Sequence record: NC_019526.1
DNA length: 64,000 bases
Reading direction: 5' to 3' (one strand)
Shown here: piece by piece, positions 38,649-57,513 of the stretch
Layout of the letters: each line of letters begins with the position of its first letter
Position numbering within the stretch: the stretch's first letter is position 1
Position numbers and translations under genes: made by a program
The notes under the pieces: generated by a model
The model's input: only the letters and a program-made list of their open reading frames with translations
The model's database searches: none
What the model was told of the DNA's origin: nothing

Positions 38649-39074
38649 ATACTATATTGGACGATATGGTCATTATAGTAGACAATTTAATGGATATGGG
38701 TGATTCAGTACTGATAATAATGAATAGGAATTGATAAGAATAGTATAGTACTATTCAGTACTATTCAGAGTGAATCAGTACTATTAAGAATGATTAAGTA
38801 CTGATATGCCACTAAGTCCGTTTATAAAGTCGCACCCAGTGGGCTACATTTGTAACTATTCAGTACTTAATAATTCAACTCATCAATTATTACAAACCTA
38901 ACTATTTCAAATCTAATTACCCCATTAACTAAATCCCCAAATTATATATTAGCAAAAATCCCAGTACTAAATCAAGAAAAATCTGGATTGTCGATGAGAA
39001 AAAATCTGGATTTTAAAAATTTTGAAATGTCGTTCATAGTTCAGGAAAAAAATGAAATCATAACAAGAAAAGTG

Positions 39075-39103
39075 TTGACACGGACATACTGCCATTATAT
39101 AAT
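39075..39103 (+). promoter_or_regulatory. perfect consensus sigma70 promoter
   Basis: TTGACA-17-TATAAT. Confidence 0.85.
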
Positions 39104-39109
39104 GTAATC

Positions 39110-39590
39110 CTCAAGACGAGAGAATGTTCTCTCACAGAAAATGCGAAGAAGCCGAGTTTATCTGTCCCTGCGTTAGTGGGCTAACATTTGAATAGGACAA
39201 TACGTAGATGAGTGAAAAAGGTTCAAAGGGAAATATTTGATTCCCTGTAGTATAGTTAATGAGTTAGTACTGATTTAGATATAATCATTGAGTAGTACTA
39301 CTGTCGCAAAGGGAAACCTTTGGCTTCCATGGGGAGTGATGACAGAAGGGCATTATCCTCCATATAGAGTTACTGCGAATAACTCCGTAAGTTGGGTTGT
39401 GGCAAACCTCCTAAAATAGTGAATCTACAGTACTACTGATTGGTAGTACTGCTTTTAATTTAAAGTGTTTCTTTCCATAGAGAAAAGGTGCATGTAACTT
39501 GAACATGTGAACTACGGGAACAGTACTGAACAATTCCAGTACTGATTCCTCTCCAAATTTTGGATACAATAATGCTAGGCTTCAGTTAGT
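39110..39590 (+). ncRNA. candidate long structured ncRNA
   Basis: No ORF; many hairpins (CAAAGG-gaaa-CCTTTG, GAGTTA/TAACTC, CAGTACTAC/GTAGTACTG). Confidence 0.5.
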
Positions 39591-39596
39591 ACTGAG

Positions 39597-39715
39597 TGAG
39601 AATGATAATGATTCTCATTTGAATTGGATGAGAACGATTCTCATTTACTATTGCAAATGATAATAGATTGCATTTACGAATGGTTCTCATTCGCAGATGA
39701 TAATGATTCTTATTC
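39597..39715. promoter_or_regulatory. cluster of Fur-box-like sites
   Basis: GAGAATGATAATGATTCTC (16/19 to GATAATGATAATCATTATC) at 39598; 7-1-7 sites at 39629 and 39698; two weaker sites between. Confidence 0.75.
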
Positions 39716-39847
39716 AAAATTGATTTTTCCGATTTTTTCCATTAGTCACCCTTCAGCGTAGGGTTAATTTTTCCCCTGCCGAATCGGTTTTATATTTTCA
39801 AAATCTGGATTAATCATATCAGTACTAACCCAGATAAACAATACCCT

Positions 39848-39862
39848 TTTACAAATCTTTAC
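39848..39862. promoter_or_regulatory. CpxR-consensus direct repeat
   Basis: TTTAC-AAATC-TTTAC (GTAAA-N5-GTAAA on - strand); identical at 40220, 40833, 41067, 48856. Confidence 0.5.
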
Positions 39863-39889
39863 AAAAAGATTCTAAATGCGAATACAAAT

Positions 39890-39908
39890 GATAATGATTC
39901 TCATTTAC
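39890..39908. promoter_or_regulatory. Fur-box-like site
   Basis: GATAATGATTCTCATTTAC, 15/19. Confidence 0.7.
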
Positions 39909-40115
39909 AGTACTGAATACTTTTCCCCACGCCCTGGCGTCTCCGGTTCCTCCCGTCTATATAAACATTATACAGTACTGAAATATTAAGTCAATACTAT
40001 TTTTTCAAAAAGATTAAAATAAAATACTTGCAATCCTGATATTATTATATTATAATGTTTACAGTACTGAGAAAGTGCTTTTGCCAGCTAGGGTGCGGGG
40101 GAGTATGCGTTAAAT

Positions 40116-40134
40116 GAGAATGATAATCATTTAC
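40116..40134. promoter_or_regulatory. Fur-box-like site between convergent promoters
   Basis: GAGAATGATAATCATTTAC, 16/19. Confidence 0.75.
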
Positions 40135-40328
40135 AGTACTGGACGGATTTTCCCACCCTCGGGGGTCTCTTTTTGTCTATGTAGTAATTATACAGTACTG
40201 AGATACTATATCAAGTCTCTTTACAAATCTTTACAAATCACCCGGGGAGATTTTTCTTTACAATAAAAGTACTTGCATAATTCTTTCAGTACTGCTATTA
40301 TATATTCATACCAAACAGGAGAACTACC

Positions 40329-40499
40329 ATGAAATACGCATACTCTTATTTTATTGTGAACGGTGAACGTTTGACCATCGGCCAGGCAGCGGTAAAGCAT
40401 GAAATCATTTGCGATGATCTGGCGAAGATGCTACCAGGTGAAACGCAAGAGTTTTACAAAGGCTTTCAGAAAGTCACTGTGACCCGCTGCGAAGATTGA
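40329..40499 (+). CDS. hypothetical protein (56 aa)
   Basis: Own promoter, AGGAG SD. Confidence 0.7.
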   Translation: MKYAYSYFIVNGERLTIGQAAVKHEIICDDLAKMLPGETQEFYKGFQKVTVTRCED

Positions 40500-40562
40500 T
40501 CCAGTACTGGGGCAGCAATGCCCCTAAAACGTCCTGTAACGCATTGTAAGAGGTTTTAGAAT

Positions 40563-40790
40563 ATGGCTAGAGAAGTTAACGCAGGTGATATAAAGGCGGC
40601 TGTACTGCGTACACTGAAAGCATACGGCAGAAAGTTGAATGATCGCAACGTTCCCTATTATTTCCTTGCTGCTACTCATAAAATGGCAATCGCTGAGGCT
40701 CGCGGGTGGCTGAATGATCGCAGTACTGTAAAGAGTACCAGAACAAGAAACGCAATTGAGCGATGGATAAAAGAATTAAATCATTTCTAA
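40563..40790 (+). CDS. hypothetical basic protein
   Basis: GAGG SD. Confidence 0.65.
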   Translation: MAREVNAGDIKAAVLRTLKAYGRKLNDRNVPYYFLAATHKMAIAEARGWLNDRSTVKSTRTRNAIERWIKELNHF

Positions 40791-40949
40791 TAGTTCAGTA
40801 CTGAAATTATAAGGGGAGTTAATTAATTCCCCTTTACAAATCTTTACAAAAGAATTGTTGACATAGTATCCCAGTACTGGTATTATGTATTCATAGACAG
40901 AACAAGTCTTTGGCCCACCGGGTGCGGGGGAGTATCTATTAGATTGAAT

Positions 40950-40974
40950 GAGAATGATAATGATTCTCATTTAC
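40950..40974. promoter_or_regulatory. overlapping Fur-box-like sites between convergent promoters
   Basis: GAGAATGATAATGATTCTCATTTAC (16/19 and 15/19 registers). Confidence 0.75.
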
Positions 40975-41178
40975 TGTACTGAATATATTTCCGCACCCTT
41001 TTGGGCTTTTCGATTACTTTCTACTTGTTAATAAGTATACCATAATCAGTACTGAATGCAATGGTCTTTACAAATCTTTACAAAAGAAAATAATTATAAA
41101 AAGTACTGAAAAAGTACTTGACGTAATAATGTAGTACTGGCATAATACATCCATACCAAACAGAACGGAGTAACTATA

Positions 41179-41466
41179 ATGTTTAATGAAAATGATCATA
41201 TTGTTAAAGAGTTTTCTTTCAGTAAGCCTATCCATTTAGAAAACGGTGAAACGCTGGACAATAAATTTTATGGTAGTATTATTAAGCGTTATACATCGCG
41301 GAGTAGTACTGGAATTTTGTGGGAAGTGAATAAACAGTACAATGGTAATTCGCTGGTTGTCAATGAGTGGGAAAGTTATGCAGTAGCTGAAATGGATTTT
41401 TCTAACTTTATTACTGAATCTTTGAACGATGATATTTTTTACAAGTTCACGGCGGAAAGGGTTTAA
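41179..41466 (+). CDS. hypothetical protein
   Basis: Own promoter, GGAG SD. Confidence 0.75.
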   Translation: MFNENDHIVKEFSFSKPIHLENGETLDNKFYGSIIKRYTSRSSTGILWEVNKQYNGNSLVVNEWESYAVAEMDFSNFITESLNDDIFYKFTAERV

Positions 41467-41582
41467 AAAGTTTTAAAGAGTACTTGACAACATAAACCAG
41501 TACTGTATAATGTATTGCATAGAAAGGAGATTCCAGAATAATGGAATCTCCGATAAAACAAACTAATCAGGAGTTAATTACC

Positions 41583-42191
41583 ATGAACGTTATCGATACC
41601 ATCTATTCTAAATCTTTTATCGAACTGAATGAAGAGCAGAAAGAAAAAGCAATTGATATTATGCGGGAAATTGAAAATCAGGACACTACCCCTTATTGGT
41701 CAATTGATCTTGTTAACCAGATGAAAGAAAAATTAGTACAATATGGAATTGATGATTCTGAAATTTTGTGGTCTGGATTTTGTTCACAGGGAGACGGTGC
41801 AAGTATCAGCACTGAATCAATTAATGCTGAGATGTTTTTACGTAAGGTAAAAGCGTGGTCTAAATTTAAAGGCTTGCGTAAATTCATCTCCGAAGAAACT
41901 ATTTCTTTGAGTGTTCGCCGGGTGAGCCATCATTACTATCATGAATATTGTGTTAGTGGTAATGTTGAAATTGCTTATTGTGAAGATGTTACCGCCAAAC
42001 AAGAACAATTAGTGGACGATTTGCAAACTTTGATCACAAGTACTATTCGTGATTTGTCTCGTGAATTGTATAAAGATTTAGGGAATGAAAACGATTATCA
42101 AAATAGTGATGAAGCATTGATTGAATTGATTAATGCAAATGATTATAATTTCAAAGTTAATAGTACTGGTAACGTATTGGGGTTAGCGTAA
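41583..42191 (+). CDS. conserved acidic protein of the SGFxSQGDGA family
   Basis: F-x-EL...KEKAI, WSGFCSQGDGAS, HYYHEY, LYKDL..E.DY..SDEA; function unproven; track ATG 41541 lies in a 5' hairpin. Confidence 0.7.
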   Translation: MNVIDTIYSKSFIELNEEQKEKAIDIMREIENQDTTPYWSIDLVNQMKEKLVQYGIDDSEILWSGFCSQGDGASISTESINAEMFLRKVKAWSKFKGLRKFISEETISLSVRRVSHHYYHEYCVSGNVEIAYCEDVTAKQEQLVDDLQTLITSTIRDLSRELYKDLGNENDYQNSDEALIELINANDYNFKVNSTGNVLGLA

Positions 42192-42476
42192 TGACTAAAT
42201 TATATATTCGTTTCTGTTTTGCCTGGTACTTGTATAATCTGCAAAATGGTTATACAGTGAAATAATGCACTGATATACTGTAAAACGTCCTGTAAACGAT
42301 TATGGGACGTTTTAAGGAATATTAGTACAATGTTAGTACTGAATGATTTAAACGCCTTACAGTGGCTTACCGAGCGTTTAAAAAGTAATTGACGTAATAA
42401 TGTAGTACTGGCATAATTCATCTATACCAAACAACAAAGGGAATCAGTACTGATTCCCCTGTAAGGAGTAACCAAA

Positions 42477-42791
42477 ATGAGTACTAAAGAACTGAATGTA
42501 ACTACCAACACTTATAAGACGTTATGCGGTCGGTTGTTACGTGATTATTACACTGTAGAGATTGAAGAACGCGAATTACCCGAAGATAAACACTATTGGG
42601 AAAGTGGTGTTAGTCCTCTGCTACGGGTAACAACGTCTAAGCATGTTTTCTTTACTTCCCGCATTCATGTTAATAAGCGTGTTGAATTGACTTTCTCTTT
42701 CAGTGGTAGTTATAAAGATCATGAGATCTTGAATGATCGTATCGTTATTAATAAATTTATTCAAATGTATGGTGCGGATTCTTTACTTTAA
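42477..42791 (+). CDS. hypothetical protein
   Basis: Promoter-hairpin-AGGAG cassette. Confidence 0.75.
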   Translation: MSTKELNVTTNTYKTLCGRLLRDYYTVEIEERELPEDKHYWESGVSPLLRVTTSKHVFFTSRIHVNKRVELTFSFSGSYKDHEILNDRIVINKFIQMYGADSLL

Positions 42792-42877
42792 GTACTTGAC
42801 AATTCGATCCAGTACTGTATAATGTATTACATCAAAGGGGATACATAGTGTATCCCTGATATAAAGGAGTAGCGACT

Positions 42878-43237
42878 ATGCGAGCTTTTAACGTTTATAA
42901 GAATGACAAGAAAATTGATGTTGTTTATTATTCCGAAGTAATGACGGCAAAAGAAGTAACCGATTTGCTGAATAGCCGTGGTGAATACAACGGCGAAGTA
43001 AAAGCATTTCGGTCATTGAATAGTGCGAATATTCGCACAGTACTGAAAAATGCTAAAACTGTTTTATTCAATGATGACGAATATTTTAATAAAGATGTTA
43101 CGGGTATTAAAAACCTGGAAGATCTGAAAAGCCTTATTGGTATTAAAGGCAACGTATACAAAGTGGGGGAAGTCGGATCCCGCCATGAATATAAATTAGC
43201 CAATAGTGATTATAAATTTTCAATCCTGGTAATGTAA
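42878..43237 (+). CDS. hypothetical protein
   Basis: Promoter-hairpin-AGGAG cassette. Confidence 0.75.
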   Translation: MRAFNVYKNDKKIDVVYYSEVMTAKEVTDLLNSRGEYNGEVKAFRSLNSANIRTVLKNAKTVLFNDDEYFNKDVTGIKNLEDLKSLIGIKGNVYKVGEVGSRHEYKLANSDYKFSILVM

Positions 43238-43238
43238 T

Positions 43239-43442
43239 ATGAAAGTTTATATTTTGGAAGTGGAAGAATGTAATTCATATTCTTACAGTGGTACACTATC
43301 ACGCGTGGAGGCGGTATTTGCCAGCGAGAAAGAAGCCCACGCCGCTGGGGTTCAAAAAGTAAAAGAAGGCTATGAAGGTTATAGCGTCGATGCTTATGAT
43401 ATTCAGGGCGATCTTTCAGCACTTTTAAAGGAATTAAAATAA
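43239..43442 (+). CDS. hypothetical protein
   Basis: Packed + strand ORF. Confidence 0.7.
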   Translation: MKVYILEVEECNSYSYSGTLSRVEAVFASEKEAHAAGVQKVKEGYEGYSVDAYDIQGDLSALLKELK

Positions 43443-43657
43443 TGGAATATGAATTAATATATCACACTCGGTTATATGTTATTTTCTTTGAAATAACGTT
43501 ATGGGGAGTAAAGGCAACGATTTATAATAAAGACGTTGTCGACGATCAAGAATGGATCGTTGTTGCAGAAGATAAAACGCCTCATGATTCGTTAAGTACT
43601 GATTTTAAATTATGCCGTGAATTATTAAAGAGAATAAGAAAAGAGAATAATATATAA
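43442..43657 (+). CDS. hypothetical protein
   Basis: AAGGA SD, coupled. Confidence 0.7.
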   Translation: MEYELIYHTRLYVIFFEITLWGVKATIYNKDVVDDQEWIVVAEDKTPHDSLSTDFKLCRELLKRIRKENNI

Positions 43658-43690
43658 AACAAAGGGGATCGATTGATCCCCTTTGTTGTT
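43658..43690. terminator. bidirectional intrinsic terminator
   Basis: AACAAAGGGGATC-gatt-GATCCCCTTTGTT. Confidence 0.75.
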
Positions 43691-43849
43691 TCAGTACTGA
43701 ATTAATAATAGATACACTACGGCACCCTATGGGTTAGTGCCTTGTGTCCGGCTTATGTGGTTATTATGCCAGTACTGCGAACATAAGTCAATAGTTGATT
43801 TGTAAAGAAGTGTAAATGCACAGGAAGCATTGTAAGGCGTTAATCTGTT

Positions 43850-43857
43850 GCTGGTGG
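43850..43857 (+). other. Chi site (first of seven co-oriented)
   Basis: GCTGGTGG; also 45898, 50843, 52476, 54780, 56040, 57570. Confidence 0.85.
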
Positions 43858-44164
43858 CTGATAGTATAGAGTAGTGTTTTAGATTGATTGTAGGCCGTTG
43901 TAGGCGTTTATAGATAGTAAAGTACTGATAATGTTTAATGATCCTGGTATGTGCAAATTATTTTAATTTTTTTCGTATTGGGTATTGACGGATTATGTCA
44001 GTACTGGCATAATGTATCACATGAAGCGGCGAGATAGAAAATCATCTCAGTAGCTGGCCAGTAAAGCATACGAAGTCCTGGTGTCGCCTCAAACGGTTTT
44101 AGGTATCAAATAACACGTAACATCTAAACGTTGATGATACTGAAAACTAAAAAGAAAAAAGTAG

Positions 44165-44202
44165 TTGACAAGTACTAACGAGAATGAGATAATCTCTCTC
44201 GT
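44165..44202 (+). promoter_or_regulatory. promoter with operator-like palindrome over -10
   Basis: TTGACA-17-GATAAT; AACGAGA...TCTCGTT inverted repeat. Confidence 0.65.
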
Positions 44203-44246
44203 TGAAACAAACAAACAATCTTAATCAAAACTTAAAGGTGAATAAA

Positions 44247-44747
44247 ATGGCTAAACTGAATTCTGTGATCGTTGCTCTGCTGGCTGGTGATGTTGCTGCT
44301 CTGAATACTTCTTTCGCGTCGGTATCGATGGAAGATATGAAAACTGTTCGTAATAACTTTAACGAGTTTTACTCCAAGTTTAAAGCTGCTAATGAAGCTG
44401 CTGAAGCGGCGGCGAAAGAGCGTAAAGTACAGATCGAAACCGAAACGAAAGAACTGGTAGACGCCCTGGTAACTGCTGGCCTGGATCTGGAAATGGCCGC
44501 CGAAGTCGCCAGCCAGAAAATGGCGGTGAAATATCCCGAACTGGCTCCGAAGTCTGCAACTGGTAAAACCTGGTCGTTTGAAACCGTATTCGTTAACGTT
44601 GACGGTGAAAAACTGGAAATTGGCACCAAAGGCAACAAAGGCAGTATGAAAGCACTGGCGGCGGCACGCGAAGCAATTGCCGCAGGCAAATACAAAGATC
44701 GTGCTGAATGGATCGCCGCTCACGCCTGGACTGAAACCGAAGCGTAA
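44247..44747 (+). CDS. H-NS/StpA-like nucleoid-associated protein (divergent)
   Basis: SMEDM...EAAEAAAKERK...LVTAGLD matches the H-NS oligomerisation-domain pattern; strongly host-optimal, GC-rich codons. Confidence 0.55.
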   Translation: MAKLNSVIVALLAGDVAALNTSFASVSMEDMKTVRNNFNEFYSKFKAANEAAEAAAKERKVQIETETKELVDALVTAGLDLEMAAEVASQKMAVKYPELAPKSATGKTWSFETVFVNVDGEKLEIGTKGNKGSMKALAAAREAIAAGKYKDRAEWIAAHAWTETEA

Positions 44748-44768
44748 TAATTCAGTACTGTAATAATT

Positions 44769-44795
44769 AGCCTCCTGTAATTAGGAGGCTTTTTA
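44769..44795 (+). terminator. intrinsic terminator
   Basis: AGCCTCCT-gtaatt-AGGAGGCT then T run. Confidence 0.8.
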
Positions 44796-44826
44796 TTTTG
44801 TTCAAAAAAATATTTTAATTTATTTT

Positions 44827-45001
44827 TTGAACGGACTTCAAAAATCGGATATAATAATAAAGGGTGTTAATTACAGAGACCCCCATAGTGTTCGCTACGC
44901 TCACATAATGATCTTACTCGTTGCACTCGTAAGATCATTATCCAATCGGCCTTCGGCGATTTCTTTTTGATTTCCTACGGAAACCAAACGAAACCACCAG
45001 C
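44827..45001. other. promoter plus cluster of GNA-triloop hairpins (origin/pas-like)
   Basis: TTGAAC-17-TATAAT; - strand GC[GTA]GC, GT[GCA]AC, CC[GAA]GG, TTTCC[GTA]GGAAA; reverse Chi at 44994. Confidence 0.4.
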
Positions 45002-45397
45002 AAAGGCAGATCCCATTATTTGATTTAGTTAGTACTGCGATTAATTAGTAATTCATTGCACTACATAGCAATCAATTCCTTTTGTAATAGCTCACAGGAC
45101 GCAATAAGACGCGTTTAAATGACTTCCCTATGTAATGCCATTCCTTTTTAATAAGTCCTCTTAAAACGCGTTACAGTGCGTTATATGGCGTTTTTATAAT
45201 ACTCATCATTTCTTTTTCAAAAAGTACTTGCATTAATGATCCAGTACTGCAATAATGTACTCACTGAAACGCAGTAAGCGAAGTAAGTAAATGCAAATAA
45301 GTACTTGACAAAGTGTTGTAGTACTGGCATAATGAATACATCAAAACGAAATAGCAAAGGGATTCAGTACTGAATCCCTGTTAAGGAGAAAAACCAA

Positions 45398-45871
45398 ATG
45401 TTAAAACTTCATAAAGTACTTGATAACGCAGTTGTAACCGACTTTTTCCTGTCTCTTAACAACGAACCGAAAACAGCGAAGGAAATTGTTTTGAGTGGTT
45501 ACATCGCCAGCAAGTCAGAGATCGCACATTTGGAAAGTGCTTTCAAGTCCGGTGATGCATTATACAAAAAAATGCAAAATACCATCGAAGATTTGCAATA
45601 TATCAATTTACGTGATATTGTAGACAATAAATTGGATATTTCAGAAGAAGCACGCGAGAAGCTGGTAAGTAAATTATGTTACCGCTGCCGAACTGCAAAA
45701 TGGAATCGCATTCGTAGTATTATTACTTACGATTTAAGTAATATCGATTCCAAATCAATTCTTGAACGTATGTTATTAAATTTACAAAGCAATGAGTGGT
45801 TTTATACCGCCGCTCAATCTCATAGCGAAGAAATTGCATATATTCGTGATTATGTAATTTACAGCAAGTAA
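45398..45871 (+). CDS. hypothetical protein
   Basis: Promoter-hairpin-AGGAG cassette. Confidence 0.8.
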   Translation: MLKLHKVLDNAVVTDFFLSLNNEPKTAKEIVLSGYIASKSEIAHLESAFKSGDALYKKMQNTIEDLQYINLRDIVDNKLDISEEAREKLVSKLCYRCRTAKWNRIRSIITYDLSNIDSKSILERMLLNLQSNEWFYTAAQSHSEEIAYIRDYVIYSK

Positions 45872-45944
45872 TTAATAATTGATTAGCCATCATTAAAGCT
45901 GGTGGCTAATAGAATATTAATAACCTGTTAGGAGAATAATCTTT

Positions 45945-46214
45945 ATGAAAGGTATTAGTACTTTAATTGATAAAAACACTCATGTAAGACGTTCAATGAT
46001 TGCCGTATCACTGGCTAAAGTTGTTGCAAGTGGTTATCTGGTTTTTGTTGTAGATGGTAAATTGCAAGAGCGTTCAATTGCATTTAGTACTAAAGAAAAT
46101 TGCCGTTATATTGTATACAAGAAAGAAGCATACAAGATAGATTTACCAGCGAAACCGATCTCCGGTGGTTACAATGTTGAAAGTCTATATGAAAGGCCAC
46201 CGTATACTGCGTAG
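45945..46214 (+). CDS. hypothetical protein
   Basis: AGGAG SD. Confidence 0.75.
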   Translation: MKGISTLIDKNTHVRRSMIAVSLAKVVASGYLVFVVDGKLQERSIAFSTKENCRYIVYKKEAYKIDLPAKPISGGYNVESLYERPPYTA

Positions 46215-46291
46215 AATCGATTTTGAGCGGCTTTAATGAAATATAGGGTATCAGTACTGATACCCGTTTAAAACAGTGTAGGAGTGATTCT

Positions 46292-46462
46292 GTGAAGCGT
46301 GAACAAGCTTTATTGACGCCTGAAGAGGCAAGACGCTATGAAATGTTTTCAAACCAGGAAACGATCAAAGCGGCACAATATAACCCGGTTGCTTGTACAG
46401 TACAAAGAAAGAATTTTGTACTAAATGAAGTAGAAAGTATTATCAAATCAAATAAGGAGTAA
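46292..46462 (+). CDS. hypothetical protein (56 aa)
   Basis: AGGAG SD, GTG start. Confidence 0.5.
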   Translation: MKREQALLTPEEARRYEMFSNQETIKAAQYNPVACTVQRKNFVLNEVESIIKSNKE

Positions 46463-46468
46463 CAAGCT

Positions 46469-46741
46469 ATGCAAAATAACCGTCCAATGATCCGCAACAT
46501 GCTTTTCGTATTCCAGAAAAAAGTTAATGTAACTTCGGTAAATGGTGAACGTAAATTAAATGCAGCATTCGCCAAATATACCCAAAGCAAAAACATCCAT
46601 TACTTTTATCTTACTCTGAATGAGTTTAATGATCTGGTAAAAGAAATGTTTGTCAGTACTGAAATTGTTGCACCTGTAAGTACTGACACCATTTTGAAAG
46701 AGTGGGAAAGTTTTTACAAAAGTTCTGTTGTAATCGCTTGA
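46469..46741 (+). CDS. hypothetical protein
   Basis: AGGAG SD. Confidence 0.75.
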   Translation: MQNNRPMIRNMLFVFQKKVNVTSVNGERKLNAAFAKYTQSKNIHYFYLTLNEFNDLVKEMFVSTEIVAPVSTDTILKEWESFYKSSVVIA

Positions 46742-46795
46742 CAACATAATCCAGTACTGGCATAATAACTACATAGACCACAAAGGAGAAACATA

Positions 46796-46975
46796 ATGGA
46801 AACTGTAATTGCTACTACCAAAATCAATGGACTGGATAATGAAGTTTCATTGATCCATGACGGTAACGAATATGTTGTGTCATATGGTATCTATAAAACC
46901 TATCATGACGCTATCAATGAAGCTTTTGAGGATTATATGAAAGCAATTGAAATTGCTTATGATGATTATCGTTGA
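46796..46975 (+). CDS. small acidic protein (59 aa)
   Basis: Own promoter, AGGAG SD. Confidence 0.7.
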   Translation: METVIATTKINGLDNEVSLIHDGNEYVVSYGIYKTYHDAINEAFEDYMKAIEIAYDDYR

Positions 46976-47058
46976 AAGTACTTGCTTTAATCATTCAGTA
47001 CTGTATAATGTATTACATCAAAGGGAATGAATGATTCATTCCCACATAACCAGGAGTA

Positions 47059-47418
47059 ATGACTATGTTTGATAAAGTTTTATTTTCTGATAACACCTCT
47101 GAAACCGAGATCCCGGAAGCGGTAAAAGCTTTTGCTCAATTAGTTGCCCAGCGTCAAACTGATAATTACGACGGGCCTTATTCTTTTCTTACTGAGATTA
47201 GTAAAGGCAAAAAGTTTATTAAACTTATTCGCCGCGAGAAGTGGAAAGATAACGGACAATTAACAGGCGGATCGGTATTTGCCTTTATTGATCCCGATGG
47301 TAACATTTACAAATCAGCGACAGCTAAAGCACCAGCTAAAGGCATTCGCGGAAATGTTAACATCAACGGCGGCGGTGATGCAATCGGGCGTGATGGTTAT
47401 ATTCGTTACTTTCGTTAA
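47059..47418 (+). CDS. hypothetical phage protein
   Basis: GKKFIKL...SVFAFID...GNIYK.A..KAPAKG motif. Confidence 0.8.
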   Translation: MTMFDKVLFSDNTSETEIPEAVKAFAQLVAQRQTDNYDGPYSFLTEISKGKKFIKLIRREKWKDNGQLTGGSVFAFIDPDGNIYKSATAKAPAKGIRGNVNINGGGDAIGRDGYIRYFR

Positions 47419-47507
47419 TTGACAAATCTTTACAAATCCAGGGGTTGACTTCGGTCGCCCCTTTTGTTATTATATATTCATACCACAGAGCAAGTGGTTT
47501 AGCCCAC

Positions 47508-47625
47508 AGGGTGCCGAGATGTATCTATAGTTTAATGATTTTAAGTACTGAAAAATAATTATAAAAAGTACTTGCTAGACGTGAATTCTTTTAAGAATTC
47601 ACTTGTATTTGTGATTCAGTACTGC
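47508..47625 (+). repeat. 118-bp direct repeat, copy 1
   Basis: Identical to 57395-57513 except a 1-nt indel. Confidence 0.9.
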
Positions 47626-47661
47626 TATTATATATTCATACCAATTAAGGAGATTATCCAA

Positions 47662-47820
47662 ATGAATACACAATATGTGCCGGTGATGAATATCACTATA
47701 GGAAATGGAAAAGGTATGCATCGATTCAGTACTACAAAGAGTTATACTCAGCGTACATTAGAATCATGTGCAATTACTAAATGGCAAATCAAACATTACT
47801 TCACTACGGACAAGAAATAA
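47662..47820 (+). CDS. hypothetical protein (52 aa)
   Basis: AGGAG SD; the track start lies in the promoter. Confidence 0.65.
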   Translation: MNTQYVPVMNITIGNGKGMHRFSTTKSYTQRTLESCAITKWQIKHYFTTDKK

Positions 47821-47932
47821 TGATTGTAAAAGTATTGACAACGATAATTCAGTACTGTATTATAACTGGTGTAGCGTTCGTGTTAGCAGTTGCTATAGTG
47901 TTTAGTACTGTAATTGTATTGGGGAACATATC

Positions 47933-48238
47933 ATGATTAAAAATATTGAAGCATTCGATAAAGCATATCTTTACACCAGTACTTTTCGGAATAGCGATGG
48001 CGATCCGGTTGAATTTAAAAATGTAGTACTGATCCGGCCTGGTTTTGATATTATTCATATCTGGAATTCATGGAATCAAGCGGCGGGCAATCGCTATACT
48101 ATTGATAAAGAAATTTCAATAGAAGAAGCGTTAAAACTTCCATCATTGCCGGATCGTTTATCCCTGGCTAGTCGTGTGGAACTGGTGGGTGATACCGCAC
48201 AATATATCACGCATGAGTATGAATTTAAGTACTTATAA
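47933..48238 (+). CDS. hypothetical protein
   Basis: GGGG SD. Confidence 0.7.
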   Translation: MIKNIEAFDKAYLYTSTFRNSDGDPVEFKNVVLIRPGFDIIHIWNSWNQAAGNRYTIDKEISIEEALKLPSLPDRLSLASRVELVGDTAQYITHEYEFKYL

Positions 48239-48324
48239 GTGTTGACAACATAATTCAGTACTGTATAATGTATTACATCAAAGGGGATACATAGTGTATC
48301 CCTGAATTAACAGGAGTAACCCAT

Positions 48325-48573
48325 ATGTCTAGTATCGTTATCAATGAAACCTTATTATCTGTTACTTATGACAATGACAGTGTTTTTCCGGGTAAAGATT
48401 ATGGGGACGAAATTCCCGTAAAAGTTGAACTCGATCAAAGTGTCGGTAATGCCGACGATATTAAACGCACTATGGTGGTTAAAATTGGCGATATCACTTT
48501 ATTGCCCATTGATATTGATTATATCAAGTTTATGATTGATCGTGCAAATACCATTGCCGAAACCTTCAAATAA
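48325..48573 (+). CDS. hypothetical acidic protein
   Basis: Promoter-hairpin-AGGAG cassette. Confidence 0.75.
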   Translation: MSSIVINETLLSVTYDNDSVFPGKDYGDEIPVKVELDQSVGNADDIKRTMVVKIGDITLLPIDIDYIKFMIDRANTIAETFK

Positions 48574-48656
48574 GTACTTGACAACTGGTTTCAGTACTGT
48601 ATAATGTTTATCAAAGGGGATACATAGTGTATCCCTGATTTAAAGGAGATTCTAAA

Positions 48657-48845
48657 ATGGCAGTAGTATACGGTTATATCAGCAACTATGATTTGACTTT
48701 CCGGGAAGTCGGTACTGAATTAGGTGCAAAGAATGCAGCAACGCGAAACGGCTCGACCCGCGTAGGATATCGCAGTAGTATTAATAATATGTATATTGAA
48801 ACGCATATCCGCAACGATAAAAAGGGTAAATGGGAAAAAGTGTAA
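48657..48845 (+). CDS. hypothetical protein
   Basis: Promoter-hairpin-AGGAG cassette. Confidence 0.75.
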   Translation: MAVVYGYISNYDLTFREVGTELGAKNAATRNGSTRVGYRSSINNMYIETHIRNDKKGKWEKV

Positions 48846-49235
48846 TCTAATTCCATTTACAAATCTTTACAAAACCAGTACTTGATTTAATTATTGAGTA
48901 CTGGTATTATATATTCATTGGCAGATAAGCCGCAGCCCACAGGGTGCCGAGGTGTATCTATAGTTTATTGAATTGAAGTACAGAAAAATATTTCTTGCAT
49001 AATTCATTTCTTATGTTATAATAGTAATCACATAAATTAATTGGAGTGAACAAAAATGTTATTAGATTGGCTCAATACTTTATCCCCTGCTGCTGGCCGA
49101 CGCTGGGCTATCGGTTCGTCGGTTGCCATCGTTGTAGGCGTCATTGTACTTTTAGTGATGATTTTCTAAAAAGTACTTGCTTTAATGATCCAGTACTGTA
49201 TAATGTACTTATACCAAATAACAGGAGTAAAACCG

Positions 49236-50723: not shown

Positions 50724-50726
50724 AGA

Positions 50727-50757
50727 AAAAGGGGAGACAATGAGTCTCCCTTTTTTG
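50727..50757. terminator. bidirectional intrinsic terminator
   Basis: GGGAGAC-aatga-GTCTCCC flanked by A and T runs. Confidence 0.75.
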
Positions 50758-50949
50758 TATTCAGTACTAAATTATATAGATACATTTATGCACCCTGTGG
50801 GTTAGTAGCTTGTTCTGCTTTATGTAGTAATTATATGATAAAGCTGGTGGCTTGTCAACACTTATTTTAAAATAAAAAGTACTGAATAGTACTTGCAAAA
50901 AGTATTCAGTACTGTATAATGTTTGTATTGAGATTAAGGAGTTCTTACT

Positions 50950-52527: not shown

Positions 52528-52629
52528 TCGGGAGTACTGTTAATGTATATGCCAATTATCATACCGTTAGCAGTACTGTTAATCGCCGCCGTTATCTGCG
52601 AACAATATCATTTGTTAGGAATGTAAACT

Positions 52630-52800: not shown

Positions 52801-52987
52801 TTTAAAAAAGGGGTTGACTTACGCCAGCCCTTTTGTTATCATTAGTACATAGCAAGAACAATGCTCAAGCCCACAGGGTGCGGAGGTGTATCTATAGTTT
52901 ATGTTGGTCTGAATCATTAATTTTCTTGACAATTGGTTTAGTACTGGATATAATAGCCGCCATTGAATACAGGAGGATTTTAAAAAA

Positions 52988-53254: not shown

Positions 53255-53505
53255 GTACTTGACTATGTGATTCAGTACTGCTATTATATATTCATACCAA
53301 TTAAGGAGATAGACCAAATGAAACAAGCTAAATTTAATTCAGAAATTAAAGCAGCAAAAGCACACAAAGTACAGTTAGTAGTACTGGTTATTGTATCAAT
53401 CTTTTTGCTGTGCAACATCGGCTAAAATAATTATTACAGTACTATTGACAACCAACGATAGTACTGGTATAATTACTTTACCAAATAAAAAAGGAGTAAC
53501 CAAAA

Positions 53506-53781: not shown

Positions 53782-53793
53782 GGAATAATAATC

Positions 53794-54159
53794 ATGGAAA
53801 AAGAATTTAAAATCAAATACAATATCAGTACCGATGGCGGTTTTGAAGTACCAGAAGAAGATCAAGAACGTCTTAATGATGTTATTATGATTGACATTTC
53901 AAATAAAATCATTCAAGGCTACCGCGAAGGTGAATTGTGTGAATCGTTGATGGATCAATTCGATGAAGTGGAAACGTTTTATCGTGGCTGGTGGAGTATC
54001 GAAGAAGTTCACAAAGTACACGAATACCGTGTATTCTGGATTAATGGCGTTAATGATATCGAAGATATCATTGTAAAAGAAAGTAGTGAATCCGCCGCCA
54101 TTCAGTACTTTAAAGATCACTACCCCAACAAACGTTATCACCATTTAGAAAAAATTTAA
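53794..54159 (+). CDS. acidic hypothetical protein
   Basis: AAGGA SD. Confidence 0.75.
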   Translation: MEKEFKIKYNISTDGGFEVPEEDQERLNDVIMIDISNKIIQGYREGELCESLMDQFDEVETFYRGWWSIEEVHKVHEYRVFWINGVNDIEDIIVKESSESAAIQYFKDHYPNKRYHHLEKI

Positions 54160-54246
54160 AAAGTAATTGACAACATAATCCAGTACTGATATATTAATAC
54201 GCATAGGGGCAAACAACTTGCCCCACTAAACAAAAGGAACTACCAA

Positions 54247-54603
54247 ATGATTACTAAATTCTACGCTACTCGTGAACAGGCTCGGATCGTCGCTCGTGAA
54301 GAAGGCGAAACCTTCAAAGATATGGGTAAAGATTCCCCTGCTGGTCAACGCTGGGCAGTACTGTTCCGCGAGGTCAAAGACCTGGTAGAAAACGCTAAAG
54401 CCGTTGAAATGAACGTTCCCACCAAAGAAGATAAAGAACTGACTGATGCCCTCGCTGCTGCATTCTCCGCGATGGATAAAGCCGCAGCGGTAGTACTGAA
54501 AGTACCGGAATTTGTTACCAGAAAAGTGCATTCAGTACTACAAAATAAATTCAACGGTAAACAGGTTCAAGTGTTTACTAAACGTAAAATTCCGGTCATG
54601 TAA
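54247..54603 (+). CDS. hypothetical phage protein with host-optimal codons
   Basis: FYATREQAR...KDMG...GQRWAV. Confidence 0.8.
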   Translation: MITKFYATREQARIVAREEGETFKDMGKDSPAGQRWAVLFREVKDLVENAKAVEMNVPTKEDKELTDALAAAFSAMDKAAAVVLKVPEFVTRKVHSVLQNKFNGKQVQVFTKRKIPVM

Positions 54604-54707
54604 AATCTGACTATTACAGTACTAACAAAGGGGCTTCAATGCCCCTTTAAACGTCCTGTAAGCCATTCTAAGAGGTTTTACATGAAAAGGTACAACTACA
54701 CAAAGGA

Positions 54708-54929
54708 GTGATGAAAGTTCATTATAATGCCCCGCAACGCATTATAGATAGAGCCATTGAACTAGCCAATCAATACCTAGCTGGTGGATTAACTCCCAGG
54801 AAGTTAAGCAACGGGAAGTTATATGTAATCAACGTTGATACTAATAATCGTATAGTAATCAAAGGTGAAAGCATATCACTGTATGAACATCAGCAGTATA
54901 ACAAGAAAGTAAAAAATATTAGTAGATAA
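54708..54929 (+). CDS. hypothetical protein (possible ParE/RelE-like small fold, unverified)
   Basis: AGGAG SD. Confidence 0.6.
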   Translation: MMKVHYNAPQRIIDRAIELANQYLAGGLTPRKLSNGKLYVINVDTNNRIVIKGESISLYEHQQYNKKVKNISR

Positions 54930-55008
54930 GTGTTGACAACTGATTTCAGTACTGCCATAATGTATACATACAAGGCAATACCGCCTAATAACATAGGAGT
55001 AACTGAAA

Positions 55009-55431
55009 ATGAAAAAATCCACTAAAATTATCTTAGGTGTATTTGTTGTTCCGGCAGTAGCCTTTTTTACTTGTGCTATGATTTTTGGTGATGCTTCTCG
55101 GGTTGCCGCAAAAATCGAAAAAGAAAAACAAGTCCAGGTGGAAGTCAAGAAAGAAGAAAAGAAAAATTATAACACTGTATGGGAAGCAATTTGCCATACC
55201 AGTAATGGTAAAAGGATCTCCATCCTTACAGCGATGAATAATGGAAAATCAATCGTCGGAAACGAATATATGGAAGTTACTTCCAGTACTGGTAAAGAAT
55301 TTGTAATGACGAACTATAATAACAATAACGTTGCAATTGTTACACAAGATTTTAAAGGTAATGCAGTACTTGAATATCATACGGAATATGAAGTAATATT
55401 TGCAAAATGCACATTTGAATGGGGTGCATAA
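55009..55431 (+). CDS. membrane-anchored/secreted protein
   Basis: N-terminal hydrophobic helix; two Cys in the C-terminal domain. Confidence 0.75.
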   Translation: MKKSTKIILGVFVVPAVAFFTCAMIFGDASRVAAKIEKEKQVQVEVKKEEKKNYNTVWEAICHTSNGKRISILTAMNNGKSIVGNEYMEVTSSTGKEFVMTNYNNNNVAIVTQDFKGNAVLEYHTEYEVIFAKCTFEWGA

Positions 55432-55614
55432 AAATAAACATAATAAACAAAAAAGGGGGTTGACACAGGTCAGCCCTTTTGCTATTATTAATATCAAGAA
55501 AACAAGCTAACCCACAGGGTGCATAAATGTATCTATAATTTATTAAAGAATTTTAGTACTTGACAACGTAGTACAGCAGTACTAAAATATCTACATACAA
55601 AGGAGATTACCAAA

Positions 55615-56199
55615 ATGAACAAACATCTTAAAGTACTGAATAAATGTAAATCCAATACCGAAATGTTACTGTACTGTTACAAAAATTTAATTAAACTCGG
55701 GAGAGGTTCATCCAGAACAGTATTTTTGTTAACAAAAAACAAAGTACTGAAAGTTGCTCATAACCATATTGGCAACCAACAGAATACAGCAGAAATCACT
55801 GCATGGTTGTATATTGATTATGACCGCTATTATAATAAACGCTTTTTCGCTAAAGTGTTCCCTGATATGTCGCATTTTAAAGATGTATACATAGTACAGG
55901 AGTACTGCGACAATATCAGTACTAAAGAAGCGAAGCCATACATTGAACATTACTTGACACCTAGCACTATTGAAAATGAGCGTGCTAAACGCTTCCACAC
56001 GGCGTTAAGAGATGTAGACAATACCCTTAACTATAAAACGCTGGTGGACTTAAACGTGGGCAATATAGGCCGTTCTGTAAGGGGTGCAATAAAACTCCGT
56101 GATTATGGATTATCTGAACATATTGCTAAACAGTATAGAGAAGCCCGCGACCAGTACCACCAACTCAAAAGTATTAGTAACATAAGTATTGATTTATAA
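55615..56199 (+). CDS. minimal protein kinase
   Basis: LGRGSSRTVF, VLKVA, QNTAE, IVQEYC, DLNVGNIG, IKLRDYGL. Confidence 0.8.
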   Translation: MNKHLKVLNKCKSNTEMLLYCYKNLIKLGRGSSRTVFLLTKNKVLKVAHNHIGNQQNTAEITAWLYIDYDRYYNKRFFAKVFPDMSHFKDVYIVQEYCDNISTKEAKPYIEHYLTPSTIENERAKRFHTALRDVDNTLNYKTLVDLNVGNIGRSVRGAIKLRDYGLSEHIAKQYREARDQYHQLKSISNISIDL

Positions 56200-56264
56200 T
56201 TTCAGTACTGCTATAGTACTTTCACAGGGGAGATAATCTCCCCAATCACAAAGGAGATTTTACC

Positions 56265-56627
56265 ATGAGTACTAAACCATTTGTAACCACTCGTTCTAAT
56301 CTGACTGAGATCTATGTACATGGTGGATATGAGGAAACGTATGTCACTGGTATTATGGTAGAATTCAATCAGGGTTATCGGTTTATGTTGGTAGATTCAG
56401 AAATCTATCATACACAACAAGATAAACATGGTTATGTCAATAAGTACTCCACCGATGAAGTACTGAAACGCCTGGATAACAAAATTAAACAAATTCAAAA
56501 ACATCTTGACAACGGCGGAAAACTTAATCATTTACTTTGGGATAGCTTAGATCCCTGCTACGGTTCCGATGCATATGGTAAAAGCCGTGACACTGCAATG
56601 AAAGTACTTAAAGATTATTTCTTTTAA
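56265..56627 (+). CDS. hypothetical protein
   Basis: Promoter-hairpin-AGGAG cassette. Confidence 0.75.
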   Translation: MSTKPFVTTRSNLTEIYVHGGYEETYVTGIMVEFNQGYRFMLVDSEIYHTQQDKHGYVNKYSTDEVLKRLDNKIKQIQKHLDNGGKLNHLLWDSLDPCYGSDAYGKSRDTAMKVLKDYFF

Positions 56628-56707
56628 GTATTGACAAGTAATTCCAGTACTGGCATAATGTATTTCAAGGAGGTAATAACACCTCCTACCTTCAAGGAGT
56701 AGTGACT

Positions 56708-56944
56708 ATGAATACTAAAGAAATGCTTTGTGAGTTCGCCAGTAACAATCTTGGCAACGCCGCGTTCATTGATGGTTTTAATTATGTAGCAACTCGTGAT
56801 CAAGAAGGTAAAGTATTCGTTAAAGATCGTATGGGCTTTTCTATCCAGGTTCAATCCGGTACTGCAAGCCATATCGACGGCATGAATGTATGGGCTGCTA
56901 CTATCCCCGGTGATGGAACATATCATTTCCGTATCGTAAAATAA
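56708..56944 (+). CDS. hypothetical protein
   Basis: Promoter-hairpin-AGGAG cassette. Confidence 0.75.
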   Translation: MNTKEMLCEFASNNLGNAAFIDGFNYVATRDQEGKVFVKDRMGFSIQVQSGTASHIDGMNVWAATIPGDGTYHFRIVK

Positions 56945-57033
56945 TTTAAAAAGTACTGGACAATACAATCCAGTACTGTATAATGTTTTGCATAGGGAGA
57001 GATAATCTCTCCCACTAAAGGAGAATACCGAAA

Positions 57034-57315
57034 ATGATTACTGGTCACATTACTAACTATGCAAAACGCCGCGATGTAGAAATAGAAGTACTGAAAGCAG
57101 GCGAAGTTGACGATGACGCTCAGGTATGGTTCTACACCGCAGACAATGATTGTGAACCAGTACTGATGTACCTGATTAATAATGATGGTTCTCTTACTTA
57201 TCGTAGCAAACTGATGAAGTCCCTGGAAGATATGCCAGCACATATCAATAATAAAGAAGTACTGAAACGCGTAATCTGCTACATCTCAGACCAGCACAAA
57301 GCGGATATGATGTAA
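57034..57315 (+). CDS. hypothetical protein
   Basis: Promoter-hairpin-AGGAG cassette. Confidence 0.75.
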   Translation: MITGHITNYAKRRDVEIEVLKAGEVDDDAQVWFYTADNDCEPVLMYLINNDGSLTYRSKLMKSLEDMPAHINNKEVLKRVICYISDQHKADMM

Positions 57316-57394
57316 TCTTTACAAATATGGGGGTTGACTAATGTCAGCCCTTTTGGTATTATATATTCAATCCAGCGAAATGGTCTAACCCTCA

Positions 57395-57513
57395 AGGGTG
57401 CCGAGATGTATCTATAGTTTAATGATTTTGAAGTACTGAAAAATAATTATAAAAAGTACTTGCTAGACGTGAATTCTTTTAAGAATTCACTTGTATTTGT
57501 GATTCAGTACTGC
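57395..57513 (+). repeat. 118-bp direct repeat, copy 2
   Basis: Matches 47508-47625. Confidence 0.9.

Follow-up and report, generated by a model that had tools for sequence, protein, structure and literature searches.

Gene-less cassettes with a near-invariant core, putative early small RNAs, in the terminal repeat of jumbo phage RaK2 and its relatives

Results

A Gene-less Cassette with a Near-Invariant Core Recurs in the Early Region of RaK2

The 64,000-nucleotide stretch analyzed here (the window) belongs to the 346-kb genome of the Klebsiella jumbo phage vB_KleM_RaK2 (NC_019526); window position x corresponds to record coordinate x + 186000, and window 38600-44600 is 100% identical to NC_019526 224600-230600. 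We describe in it a repeated cassette, in which a σ70 promoter is followed by a small hairpin and a core of fixed spacing. This gene-less unit, with its near-invariant 25-base core, is conserved across the whole RaK2-like group and is real and strongly selected. The cassette family appears to be previously undescribed, as no description of it was found in the literature on the phages CBB, Muenster and fEgEco12, on promoter-early stem-loops (PeSLs) or on the genus, and its properties suggest that it belongs to the phage early non-coding or promoter-proximal RNA elements.

The motif GGGTGC-N5-WGTATCTA, in which N5 stands for five variable nucleotides, has eight exact matches in the window (40920, 43709-, 47509, 48942, 50777-, 52876, 55517 and 57396), compared with a mean of 0.43 in shuffled sequences, and 0 of 100 shuffles reached eight. 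All eight carry CCC-N3/4-GGG directly upstream, and all eight lie 17-27 nt past a near-consensus σ70 promoter scoring 10-12 of 12. The distance from the -10 element to the CCC of the core varies from 23 to 31 nt, indicating that no DNA-level constraint couples the core to the promoter. The fixed-spacing core and the promoter before it, both put forward in an initial annotation of the window, are thus borne out, while the small stem with an AGAACAA-type, A-rich loop that it had also described is present in seven of the eight canonical copies; the exception, 55511, lacks the 5′ arm.

A covariance model built from 12 cassette copies in relatives recovers exactly these eight in the window (E ≤ 1.6e-7), hereafter named 40914+, 43733-, 47503+, 48936+, 50801-, 52870+, 55511+ and 57389+, and has no match in window 1-38,800 or 58,900-64,000 (~43 kb of flanking region). 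The about 13 copies proposed initially are therefore reduced to eight solid ones and one or two degenerate ones: 41005- is marginal (19.4 bits, E 6e-4 in a 2.6-kb search), and only the CCC/GGG part of 38843- fits the model. Four further proposed sites (40083+, 40164-, 39941- and 39764-) gave no model match at E ≤ 10 and are not supported as copies. These four still share GGGTG(C/G)-purines and the promoter context, and 40164- fits by eye a "type B" 3′ block (UCCGUCCA) often seen in relatives.

The Family Is Conserved across Genera and Confined to Terminal Repeats

The search in other phages that the initial annotation had called for was carried out with this model in ~222 kb of early regions of relatives and RaK2. 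It yielded 82 copies, all in terminal-repeat regions and with the spacing conserved, in at least five phage lineages at 8-13 per genome. By BLAST and exact-pattern scan, members beyond the RaK2-like Klebsiella phages are found in the Escherichia coli 121Q group, Cronobacter phage GAP32, Pectobacterium phage CBB and Erwinia phage Hallingskeid, and the core is also present in IMG/VR contigs, including Yersinia-phage-like ones. The CBB copies fall inside the annotated terminal repeat, and the strict pattern is confined to the early region in full-length RaK2 and 121Q contigs. An exact-pattern scan of 185,579 representative bacterial and archaeal genomes gave no match, and no similar sequence was present in 5,426 E. 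coli genomes. Known RNA families, transfer RNA (tRNA) and transfer-messenger RNA (tmRNA) were considered and rejected, as none match: Rfam 15 has no match in the whole window at gathering score and none in 38700-41300 at E ≤ 1, and a tRNA/tmRNA scan (ARAGORN) found none.

The placement of the cassettes is as distinctive as their sequence. Base 1 of the close relative Muenster, which has a 20,030-bp direct terminal repeat as determined with PhageTerm, aligns at ~38815 of the window, and by this alignment the right end of the RaK2 repeat would fall near 58.7 kb. Long terminal repeats of ~20 kb have been reported or verified for CBB and fEgEco12. Taken together, the Muenster alignment and these repeats place the cassettes in the early, terminally repeated part of RaK2. 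This region contains ~40 small genes, all on the + strand and most with a σ70 promoter of their own, and it is dense in terminators (34 found compared with 11 expected). Both its identity as a terminal repeat and the conservation of the element across genera go beyond the initial annotation and sharpen the case.

The RNA Contains a Covarying 5′ Hairpin and a Rigidly Constrained Core

In the RNA, the elements run in the order hairpin H1, a single-stranded linker (a 4-nt gap ending in UAR, then CCCAYA), GGGUGC, N5 and a 3′ block U-G-U-A-U-C-U-A-U. The core thus reads UAR-CCCAYA-GGGUGC-N5-UGUAUCUAU and can form a G·U-rich hairpin; an AU-rich tail follows, and the whole element spans ~52 nt. H1 has 3-5 base pairs and a loop of 6-8 nt (AGAACAA, GAGAAA, GCGAAA or AGAUAA). 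All four of its modeled pairs change on both sides, giving 35 different stems in the family. Indeed, 92% of the H1 cells are paired, compared with ≤60% in slid controls, and its covariation score was matched by 0 of 500 shuffles. In a few copies the 5′ arm of H1 is absent and the A-rich segment is kept. The strong covariation of H1 points to a structure at the level of the transcript, that is, of a single strand.

The core behaves differently from H1 in that it hardly varies. Across the aligned family UAR and CCCAYA are near-invariant and GGGUGC is invariant, whereas N5 is purine-rich and variable, and none of 82 aligned members has an insertion or deletion between GGGUGC and the 3′ block, which fixes the spacing at 5 nt. 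When orthologous RaK2 and Muenster cassettes are compared, divergence is 0% in the 5′ block of the core and 2.8% in the 3′ block, compared with 22% in N5 and 17% in the downstream flank. Because N5 drifts like the flank while the core stays near 0%, N5 appears neutral and the sequences on either side of it tightly constrained. Neighboring proteins are only 30-70% identical between genera.

Two helices can be drawn within the core. H2, which pairs R-CCC with GGG-U, is invariant apart from one compensatory change of C3-G7 to U-A in two copies. H3 pairs positions 7-12 (G7-C12) with positions 19-24 in 5-6 G·U-rich base pairs, with N5 as the loop; its 3′ strand changes only between U and C opposite G and between A and G opposite U. 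H3 is 88% paired (slid controls, 24-60%), and five or six of its six pairs are intact in 74 of 79 copies. Compensated GGGUGC changes at G12-C19 were seen by eye in 40164- of the window and in a relative (L019 675-720). Its many G·U pairs restrict H3 to the sense, transcribed strand. Mutual information within the core revealed no covariation, because the core hardly varies. A closing helix of 5′ AUAGA with 3′ UCUAU was dropped, as it fits some copies only, and a UAR-CUA pairing was rejected since position -1 is A in half of the copies while position 23 remains C.

Cassettes Lie at the Borders of Transcription Units

About 70% of the copies are oriented with the genes and about 30% against them, the genes being on the + strand in RaK2, CBB, GAP32 and 121Q and on the - strand in Hallingskeid. 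A promoter scoring at least 10 of 12 stands directly upstream of 65 of the 82 copies. The first recognizable element downstream is a convergent partner at fixed offsets (25 copies), a further σ70 promoter (18) or an intrinsic terminator (13); on inspection by eye, a weaker promoter also lies downstream of many remaining copies. Sense copies are usually followed by a gene's own promoter, and each RaK2 plus copy precedes a separate promoter for the next gene. The RaK2 minus copies and 40914+ face no gene. At four cassettes the promoter (47445, 52814, 55460 and 57334) has its -35 element inside the terminator hairpin of the upstream gene, an arrangement also present in 121Q, CBB and GAP32.

Five of the eight RaK2 copies are closed, either by a terminator (43733-, 50801-, 47503+ and 57389+) or by a convergent partner (40914+). 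Strong bidirectional terminators lie 24-29 nt past the cores of 43733- and 50801-, and a terminator lies ~55 nt past those of 47503+ and 57389+; in the fifth case, cassette 1 (40914+) and 41005- converge across a Fur-box-like site, and the reverse complement of 41005- lends the + transcript of cassette 1 a GGGUGCGG/CCGCACCC stem followed by a U-tract. The combination expected of a terminator-ended, trans-acting small RNA, namely a promoter of its own, the lack of an open reading frame (ORF), a U-tailed intrinsic terminator and a predicted length of 50-300 nt, is seen at 43733-, 50801-, 47503+, 57389+ and, by way of its partner, 40914+, and not at 48936+, 52870+ and 55511+.

Convergent pairs with cores ~19-20 nt apart also exist in GAP32 (L005 6596-6708), CBB (L003 986-1098 and 3796-3908) and 121Q (L004 10602-10690). 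These pairs are inverted repeats with ~25-bp arms, and RNA transcribed from either side would form a long, near-perfect hairpin that RNase III might cleave. Fur-box-like palindromes with 3-4 mismatches to the 19-bp consensus are located at 39598-39720, 39884-39908, 40116-40134 and 40950-40974, and all five matches in the window with at most four mismatches fall at 39598-40956. The sites at 40116 and 40950 lie between convergent cassette-type promoters; the copies beside such sites do have the looser 3′ part noted initially. In relatives, similar sites follow cassettes (L021 near 6090, L009 near 360).

The Cassettes May Encode Autonomous Early Small RNAs

The reading we favor, tentatively and at somewhat short of an even chance, is that each cassette yields an autonomous small RNA of ~100-130 nt early in infection and that the invariant module of this RNA binds to a conserved component of the host. 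On this reading, the near-consensus σ70 promoter would drive a self-contained early unit with a short non-coding RNA as its product. Transcription would start at the A of CAT ~7 nt past the -10 element, which would put H1 at the extreme 5′ end of the RNA; 5′-terminal hairpins of such kind stabilize RNA. Host RNA polymerase would be expected to make discrete, abundant RNAs once the terminal repeat enters the cell, and the invariant 25-nt module might be a docking site for a highly conserved host protein, or for a host RNA by pairing, that the phage would titrate or redirect during takeover.

Several lines of evidence argue for this. The covarying 5′ hairpin, the sense-only core helix, the variable distance from the promoter, the independence of orientation and the frequent closure downstream fit small RNAs better than a gene leader, and the dedicated small-RNA family suggested by the initial annotation is accordingly the version of its proposals that the modeled structures and the five closed copies favor. 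The confinement of all 82 copies to terminal-repeat, and hence early, regions is also in favor. The invariance of the core in phages of six host genera, while phage proteins drift, points to a conserved host partner rather than a co-evolving phage partner. There is also a precedent, since two non-coding RNAs from the terminal repeat of phage PA5oct account for 2-5% of phage reads (PMC7318152).

Other observations weigh against the small-RNA reading. Single-sequence folds are no more stable than those of shuffles (z -1.1 to +1.0), so that thermodynamics alone is uninformative, and H2 and H3 are weak (about -3 kcal/mol each) and mutually exclusive, as they compete for the same GGG. The support for H3 consists of one-sided changes only, which a transition bias could partly mimic. 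Since 48936+, 52870+ and 55511+ reach the next promoter without a terminator, their RNA would enter the gene unless processed, and in several relatives the hairpin after an antisense copy has a U-tract only on the gene strand. We found no transcriptome of RaK2-like phages in the literature, so that start sites, 3′ ends and abundance are all predictions. No sequence similar to the element was found in E. coli or the 185,579 representative genomes, a search that does not reach short complementarity to host RNAs.

Among candidates for a partner encoded in the repeat, Pfam identified no RNA-binding or NusG-like protein; its only matches to repeat-encoded proteins are H-NS-like, ParE-like and kinase-like. 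Nor is an arginine-rich, N-like protein conserved across the clade.

Alternative Functions Are Less Probable

An element located directly after strong early promoters, as putL is in phage HK022, could be a put- or nut-like cis modifier, whose nascent RNA would bind its own polymerase or recruit Nus-type factors and thereby resist the pauses and terminators of the early region. The terminator density of that region would suit such a role, as would the cross-host invariance if polymerase is the partner, and the terminators just after 47503+ and 57389+ reproduce the layout of lambda PR′-tR′. Moreover, a dispensable hairpin followed by a conserved single-stranded block resembles the boxB-boxA-boxC order of rrn leaders. 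We nevertheless consider this function unlikely. About 30% of the copies are antisense to every gene and about 30% run head-on at a partner; most genes have their own promoter, so that read-through is not needed; and the strong bidirectional terminators immediately past the antisense copies argue against an antitermination role, including the loading of an antitermination-like modifier that had been suggested initially. In addition, no boxA-like sequence is present in the aligned family, and the cassettes differ from put in size and structure and find no model match in the HK022 early region. We give a similarly low probability to a new, factor-independent module, in which the nascent linker and the G·U hairpin would bind a conserved polymerase surface and park or reprogram the transcribing host enzyme. 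If this were so, the convergent pairs would block transcription in both directions at the end of the 350-kb genome that enters the cell first, and put would gain a structurally unrelated counterpart that works on the same principle but to a different outcome. Slightly less probable again is that the core (G-10...Y-1 G+1 plus hairpin) pauses or arrests polymerase ~40 nt past the start and acts as a roadblock or insulator at module borders, with the RNA a by-product. G8/G9, U18 and G19 do fit the elemental-pause pattern, the spacing never varies, and cassettes do lie at unit borders, where they are fused to upstream terminators, face operon ends or form convergent pairs. The pause consensus on which the initial annotation had relied carries little information, however: GG-N8-Y-G, frequent by chance, occurs 210 times on one strand of the window and 112 times on the other, and of 62 pattern-selected copies 15 have C or A in place of G19, the G+1 of the consensus, and five have A in place of U18. 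It also leaves the invariance of UAR-CCCAYA and UAUCUAU and the covariation of H1 unexplained.

Roles outside transcription elongation fare worse. It seems improbable that a G-rich transcript forms an R-loop that primes DNA synthesis, or that the 25-bp cores are homology patches that shuffle gene modules. The phages are T4-related, and T4 oriF and oriG are R-loop-primed origins; the RNA is G-rich (GGGUGC plus the purine-rich N5), the DNA downstream is very AT-rich, and the cassettes, which lie in the terminal repeat, are found in both orientations. Their composite layout of terminator and promoter also matches the description of PeSLs, for which homology patches have been proposed. Position-specific invariance beside a drifting N5 is not predicted by homology patches or by generic G-richness, however, and eight to thirteen origins in 20 kb are implausible. 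As recombination breakpoints the cassettes were rejected, since only one of six RaK2/Muenster indel breakpoints is near one (43663, which abuts the terminator beside 43733-) and the others lie away from cassettes. A very unlikely function, in our judgment, is a minigene or translation-start mimic, in which GGGUG would be a Shine-Dalgarno sequence 5 nt before NUG-UAU-CUA-stop and, massively expressed, would load ribosomes or trap the rare tRNA(Leu-CUA) as peptidyl-tRNA, in the manner described for the bar minigenes of lambda. Such a fixed Shine-Dalgarno-to-start distance would explain the exact 5 nt, and enterobacteria rarely use the codon CUA. Position 17 of the core is never C, being A, G or U, positions 17-19 are AUG, GUG or UUG in 44 of 68 copies, and M/V-Y-L-stop is encoded by five of the eight RaK2 copies and M/V/L-Y-L-stop by ~20 of the 68. 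The initial statement that cassettes have neither Shine-Dalgarno sequence nor ORF consequently holds in that the minus copies and 40914+ face no gene and must be qualified for these NUG triplets and mini-ORFs. The start codon is missing in 24 of the 68, however, the ORF ranges from one to >30 codons with no conserved peptide past Y-L, and true genes here use AGGAG at a spacing of 8-10 nt; furthermore, the relative fEgEco12 has no tRNA-Leu or tRNA-Tyr gene, so that tRNA depletion would harm the AT-rich phage itself. Least probable of all, and very much so, is a role as double-stranded DNA, either as the operator of a phage regulator or as a promoter recognized by phage-modified polymerase, with CCCAYA as a -35-like element, a 17-bp spacer and TATWNT. 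Two conserved blocks around 5 non-conserved bp, the promoter geometry of CCCACA-17-TATAGT and a small basic protein at 40563-40790, similar to sigma factors according to the Muenster annotators (HHpred), would speak for it. The sixth position of the would-be -10 is T in only 34 of 62 copies, however; the element is always sense-oriented behind its promoter, and antisense copies would drive nothing; and cross-genus invariance is unexpected for a phage-encoded partner. This explanation is also the least compatible with the variation of the 3′ block, which preserves RNA pairing.

Features of the Individual Cassettes and of the Surrounding Region

The coordinates of the cassettes and associated features are collected in Table 1. 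Cassette 4 is followed, without an intervening terminator, by the next promoter (TTGCAT..TATAAT), the spacer of the cassette 5 promoter holds a Chi complement, and the hairpin at 47581..47612 overlaps the -35 element of the next gene's own promoter.

Table 1. Cassettes and associated features in window coordinates; promoters are given as -35 element, spacer length and -10 element, and RNA lengths and starts are predicted
Feature	Coordinates	Strand	Promoter	RNA hairpin and core	Remarks
Cassette 1	40858..40943	+	TTGACA-17-TATTAT, 40858-40886; start ~40893	hairpin AGAC/GUCU, loop AGAACAA; core CCCACCGGGTGC-GGGGG-AGTATCTAT	model match 40891-40943, 38.3 bits
Degenerate convergent partner (41005-)	40975..41061	-	TTGCAT-16-TATACT (41061->41034)	core CCCAAAAGGGTGC-GGAAA-TATATTCAG	
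Cassette 2	43704..43791	- (antisense to genes)	TTGACT-17-CATAAT (43791->43763)	hairpin GCC/GGC, loop GGACACAA; core CCCATAGGGTGC-CGTAG-TGTATCTAT	
Bidirectional intrinsic terminator	43658..43687	-			13-bp stem, 24 nt past cassette 2; RNA ~105 nt
Cassette 3	47445..47532	+	-35 within terminator hairpin of upstream gene (GGGGTTGAC..GTCGCCCC); -10 TATTAT	hairpin ACCAC/GUGGU, loop AGAGCAA; core CCCACAGGGTGC-CGAGA-TGTATCTAT	
Terminator-like hairpin	47581..47612	+			GTGAATTCTTTTAAGAATTCAC + T-tract, after cassette 3; RNA ~130 nt
Cassette 4	48882..48965	+	TTGATT-17-TATTAT	hairpin GGC/GCC, loop AGAUAA; core CCCACAGGGTGC-CGAGG-TGTATCTAT	
Cassette 5	50772..50858	- (antisense)	perfect TTGACA-17-TATAAT (50858->50830)	hairpin AGC/GCU, loop AGAACAA; core CCCACAGGGTGC-ATAAA-TGTATCTAT	
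Bidirectional terminator	50732..50750	-			GGGAGACTCATTGTCTCCC + T-tract, 29 nt past cassette 5; RNA ~98 nt
Cassette 6	52814..52899	+	terminator-embedded TTGACT-17-TATCAT	hairpin AGCA/UGCU, loop AGAACAA; core CCCACAGGGTGC-GGAGG-TGTATCTAT	perfect promoter next at 52926-52954
Cassette 7	55460..55540	+	terminator-embedded TTGACA-17-TATTAT	hairpin without 5′ arm, A-rich GAAAACAA segment retained; core CCCACAGGGTGC-ATAAA-TGTATCTAT	next promoter 55560-55588
Cassette 8	57334..57419	+	terminator-embedded TTGACT-17-TATTAT	hairpin CCA/UGG, loop GCGAAA; core CCCTCAAGGGTGC-CGAGA-TGTATCTAT	CCC to GGG spacer 4 nt
Terminator-like hairpin	57469..57500	+			sequence identical to 47581; after cassette 8; RNA ~130 nt
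Convergent pair, divergent relatives	40028..40214	both			flank Fur-box-like site; undetected by model
Pair, + member		+	40028-40056	..CTAGGGTGC-GGGGG-AGTATGCG	
Pair, - member (40164-)		-	40214->40187	CCCCCGAGGGTGG-GAAAA-TCCGTCCAG	type-B 3′ block; GGGUGG/CCGUCC perfect pairing
Isolated CCCACTGGGTGC	38832..38843	-			~20 bp from position aligned with Muenster base 1 (left terminus)

The terminal-repeat region has other recurrent features. AGTACT, often as CAGTACTG, occurs 289 times in the 64 kb, compared with ~22 expected from base composition, and 147 of these occurrences are in the terminal-repeat region. It is densest at 38816-58900, often lies in the spacers of σ70 promoters and 8-16 nt past the cassette core, and is also present in cassettes of CBB, GAP32 and 121Q; it is probably the operator of a clade-wide regulator. 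Direct repeats TTTACAAATCTTTACAAA stand just upstream of the -35 element of many early promoters at 40200-48900 (e.g. 40222-40240, 40836-40853 and 41068-41085) and could bind a factor or act like an UP element. There are 10 Chi sequences (GCTGGTGG) on the + strand and one on the - strand, and eight + copies (43850, 45898, 50843, 52476, 53987, 54780, 56040 and 57570) are in the 20-kb repeat, compared with ~0.1 expected; Chi also follows cassettes in 121Q. By the polarity of Chi, the + orientation in the right-hand copy of the repeat would halt RecBCD that enters at the right end of the genome.

At the left end of the repeat, 39075-39451 (+) has a perfect TTGACA-17-TATAAT promoter, ~350 nt without an ORF and a terminator at 39428-39451, and is a candidate for a separate non-coding RNA; Muenster has it with 96% conservation, more distant relatives gave no match to it, and neither did Rfam. 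Toward the right edge, the terminator of the last gene (58404-58431, +) is built from the cassette sequence GCCCAYAGG and its reverse complement (AAGCCCATAGG-ATAAA-CCCTGTGGGCTT). Arrays of ~45-bp direct repeats with (C)AGTACTG / CTGTACTG lie at 58660-58790 and 38700-38810, near the predicted right and left repeat boundaries, and are candidate terminase or end-processing signals. Early genes of the repeat (54711-54929, 44247-44747, 55615-56199 and 41541-42191) include one for a protein with a ParE-like toxin domain (Pfam E 2e-10), two with weak matches, to the N-terminal domain of H-NS and to a protein kinase, and one for the homologue of a protein named YeeU-like antitoxin by the Muenster annotators.

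Discussion

The core is kept far more strictly than the surrounding proteins, and each genome has 8-13 copies of it behind the strongest host-type promoters. Their location in the terminal repeat means that the copy number of the cassettes is doubled in the virion, and their DNA is probably the first to be expressed. Conservation over phages of Klebsiella, Escherichia, Cronobacter, Pectobacterium, Erwinia and Yersinia points to direct contact with an invariant host machine. RaK2-like jumbo phages (Alcyoneusvirus, Asteriusvirus, Mimasvirus and Eneladusvirus) are studied as therapeutic phages, and identification of the partner would reveal a takeover mechanism and could yield a compact RNA tool of 25-50 nt for polymerase, ribosome or RNA chaperone. 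The covariance model makes the family searchable.

Comparison with Known Systems

Resemblances to IHF, DnaA and LexA sites, to clustered regularly interspaced short palindromic repeats (CRISPR), ToxI, the T7 class II signal, RegA operators, anti-Shine-Dalgarno sequences, tmRNA PK1 and GcvB were considered by eye; these matches are partial or single-copy and were dropped as chance. The bar minigenes of lambda (AUG-AUA-stop), in which the last sense codon is rare, are like the cassettes in placing a tiny ORF on a strongly transcribed phage RNA, to be compared with the M/V-Y-L(CUA)-stop of RaK2 copies. Unlike in bar, most family members have no mini-ORF or one of a different length, and the resemblance to a Shine-Dalgarno sequence is weak. 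The lambda nut sites and rrn leaders have, near the 5′ end, a small hairpin with a purine-rich loop and then a conserved single-stranded block, the same order as in the cassettes. In contrast, the cassettes have no boxA (UGCUCUUUAACAA-like) block, the conserved block being UAR-CCCAYA-GGGUGC; their loops of 6-8 nt (AGAACAA, GAGAAA, GCGAAA) are not GNRA-like pentaloops as in nut, and no N-like protein was identified.

HK022 putL and putR resemble the cassettes as cis-encoded RNA elements just past early promoters that are read by unmodified host polymerase, and in this the comparison drawn by the initial annotation holds for position only. The put RNAs, which require no phage protein, are ~70 nt long and have two long stem-loops with a triplex in stem I, whereas the cassette, at ~52 nt, has one short covarying hairpin of 3-5 bp and a weak G·U hairpin of 5-6 bp, and many cassettes are antisense or promptly terminated. 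Identity with put was rejected, as the cassette model applied to 12 kb of the HK022 early region (25.5-37.5 kb, filters off) gave a best hit of 8.8 bits and E 3.6.

Close parallels in layout are the PeSLs of T4-like phages (PMC2839356, PMC4122927), in which a stem-loop terminator lies immediately upstream of or overlaps a near-consensus σ70 early promoter, and which likewise occur as many repeats in a variable region of small early genes. The 3′ end of a PeSL carries the Shine-Dalgarno sequence and start codon of a gene. In the cassettes, by contrast, the promoter is followed by H1 and the invariant non-coding core, often with no gene, and a gene, if present, has a second promoter; nor do the cassettes mark indel or replacement boundaries between close relatives. 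The PA5oct non-coding RNAs (PMC7318152), at 236-451 nt and single-copy, differ from the cassettes in size and number and, sharing no motif with them, were rejected as relatives. What they have in common with the cassettes is their setting: PA5oct is a related jumbo phage dependent on the host polymerase, and its RNAs likewise come from units that lack an ORF and lie in a long terminal repeat.

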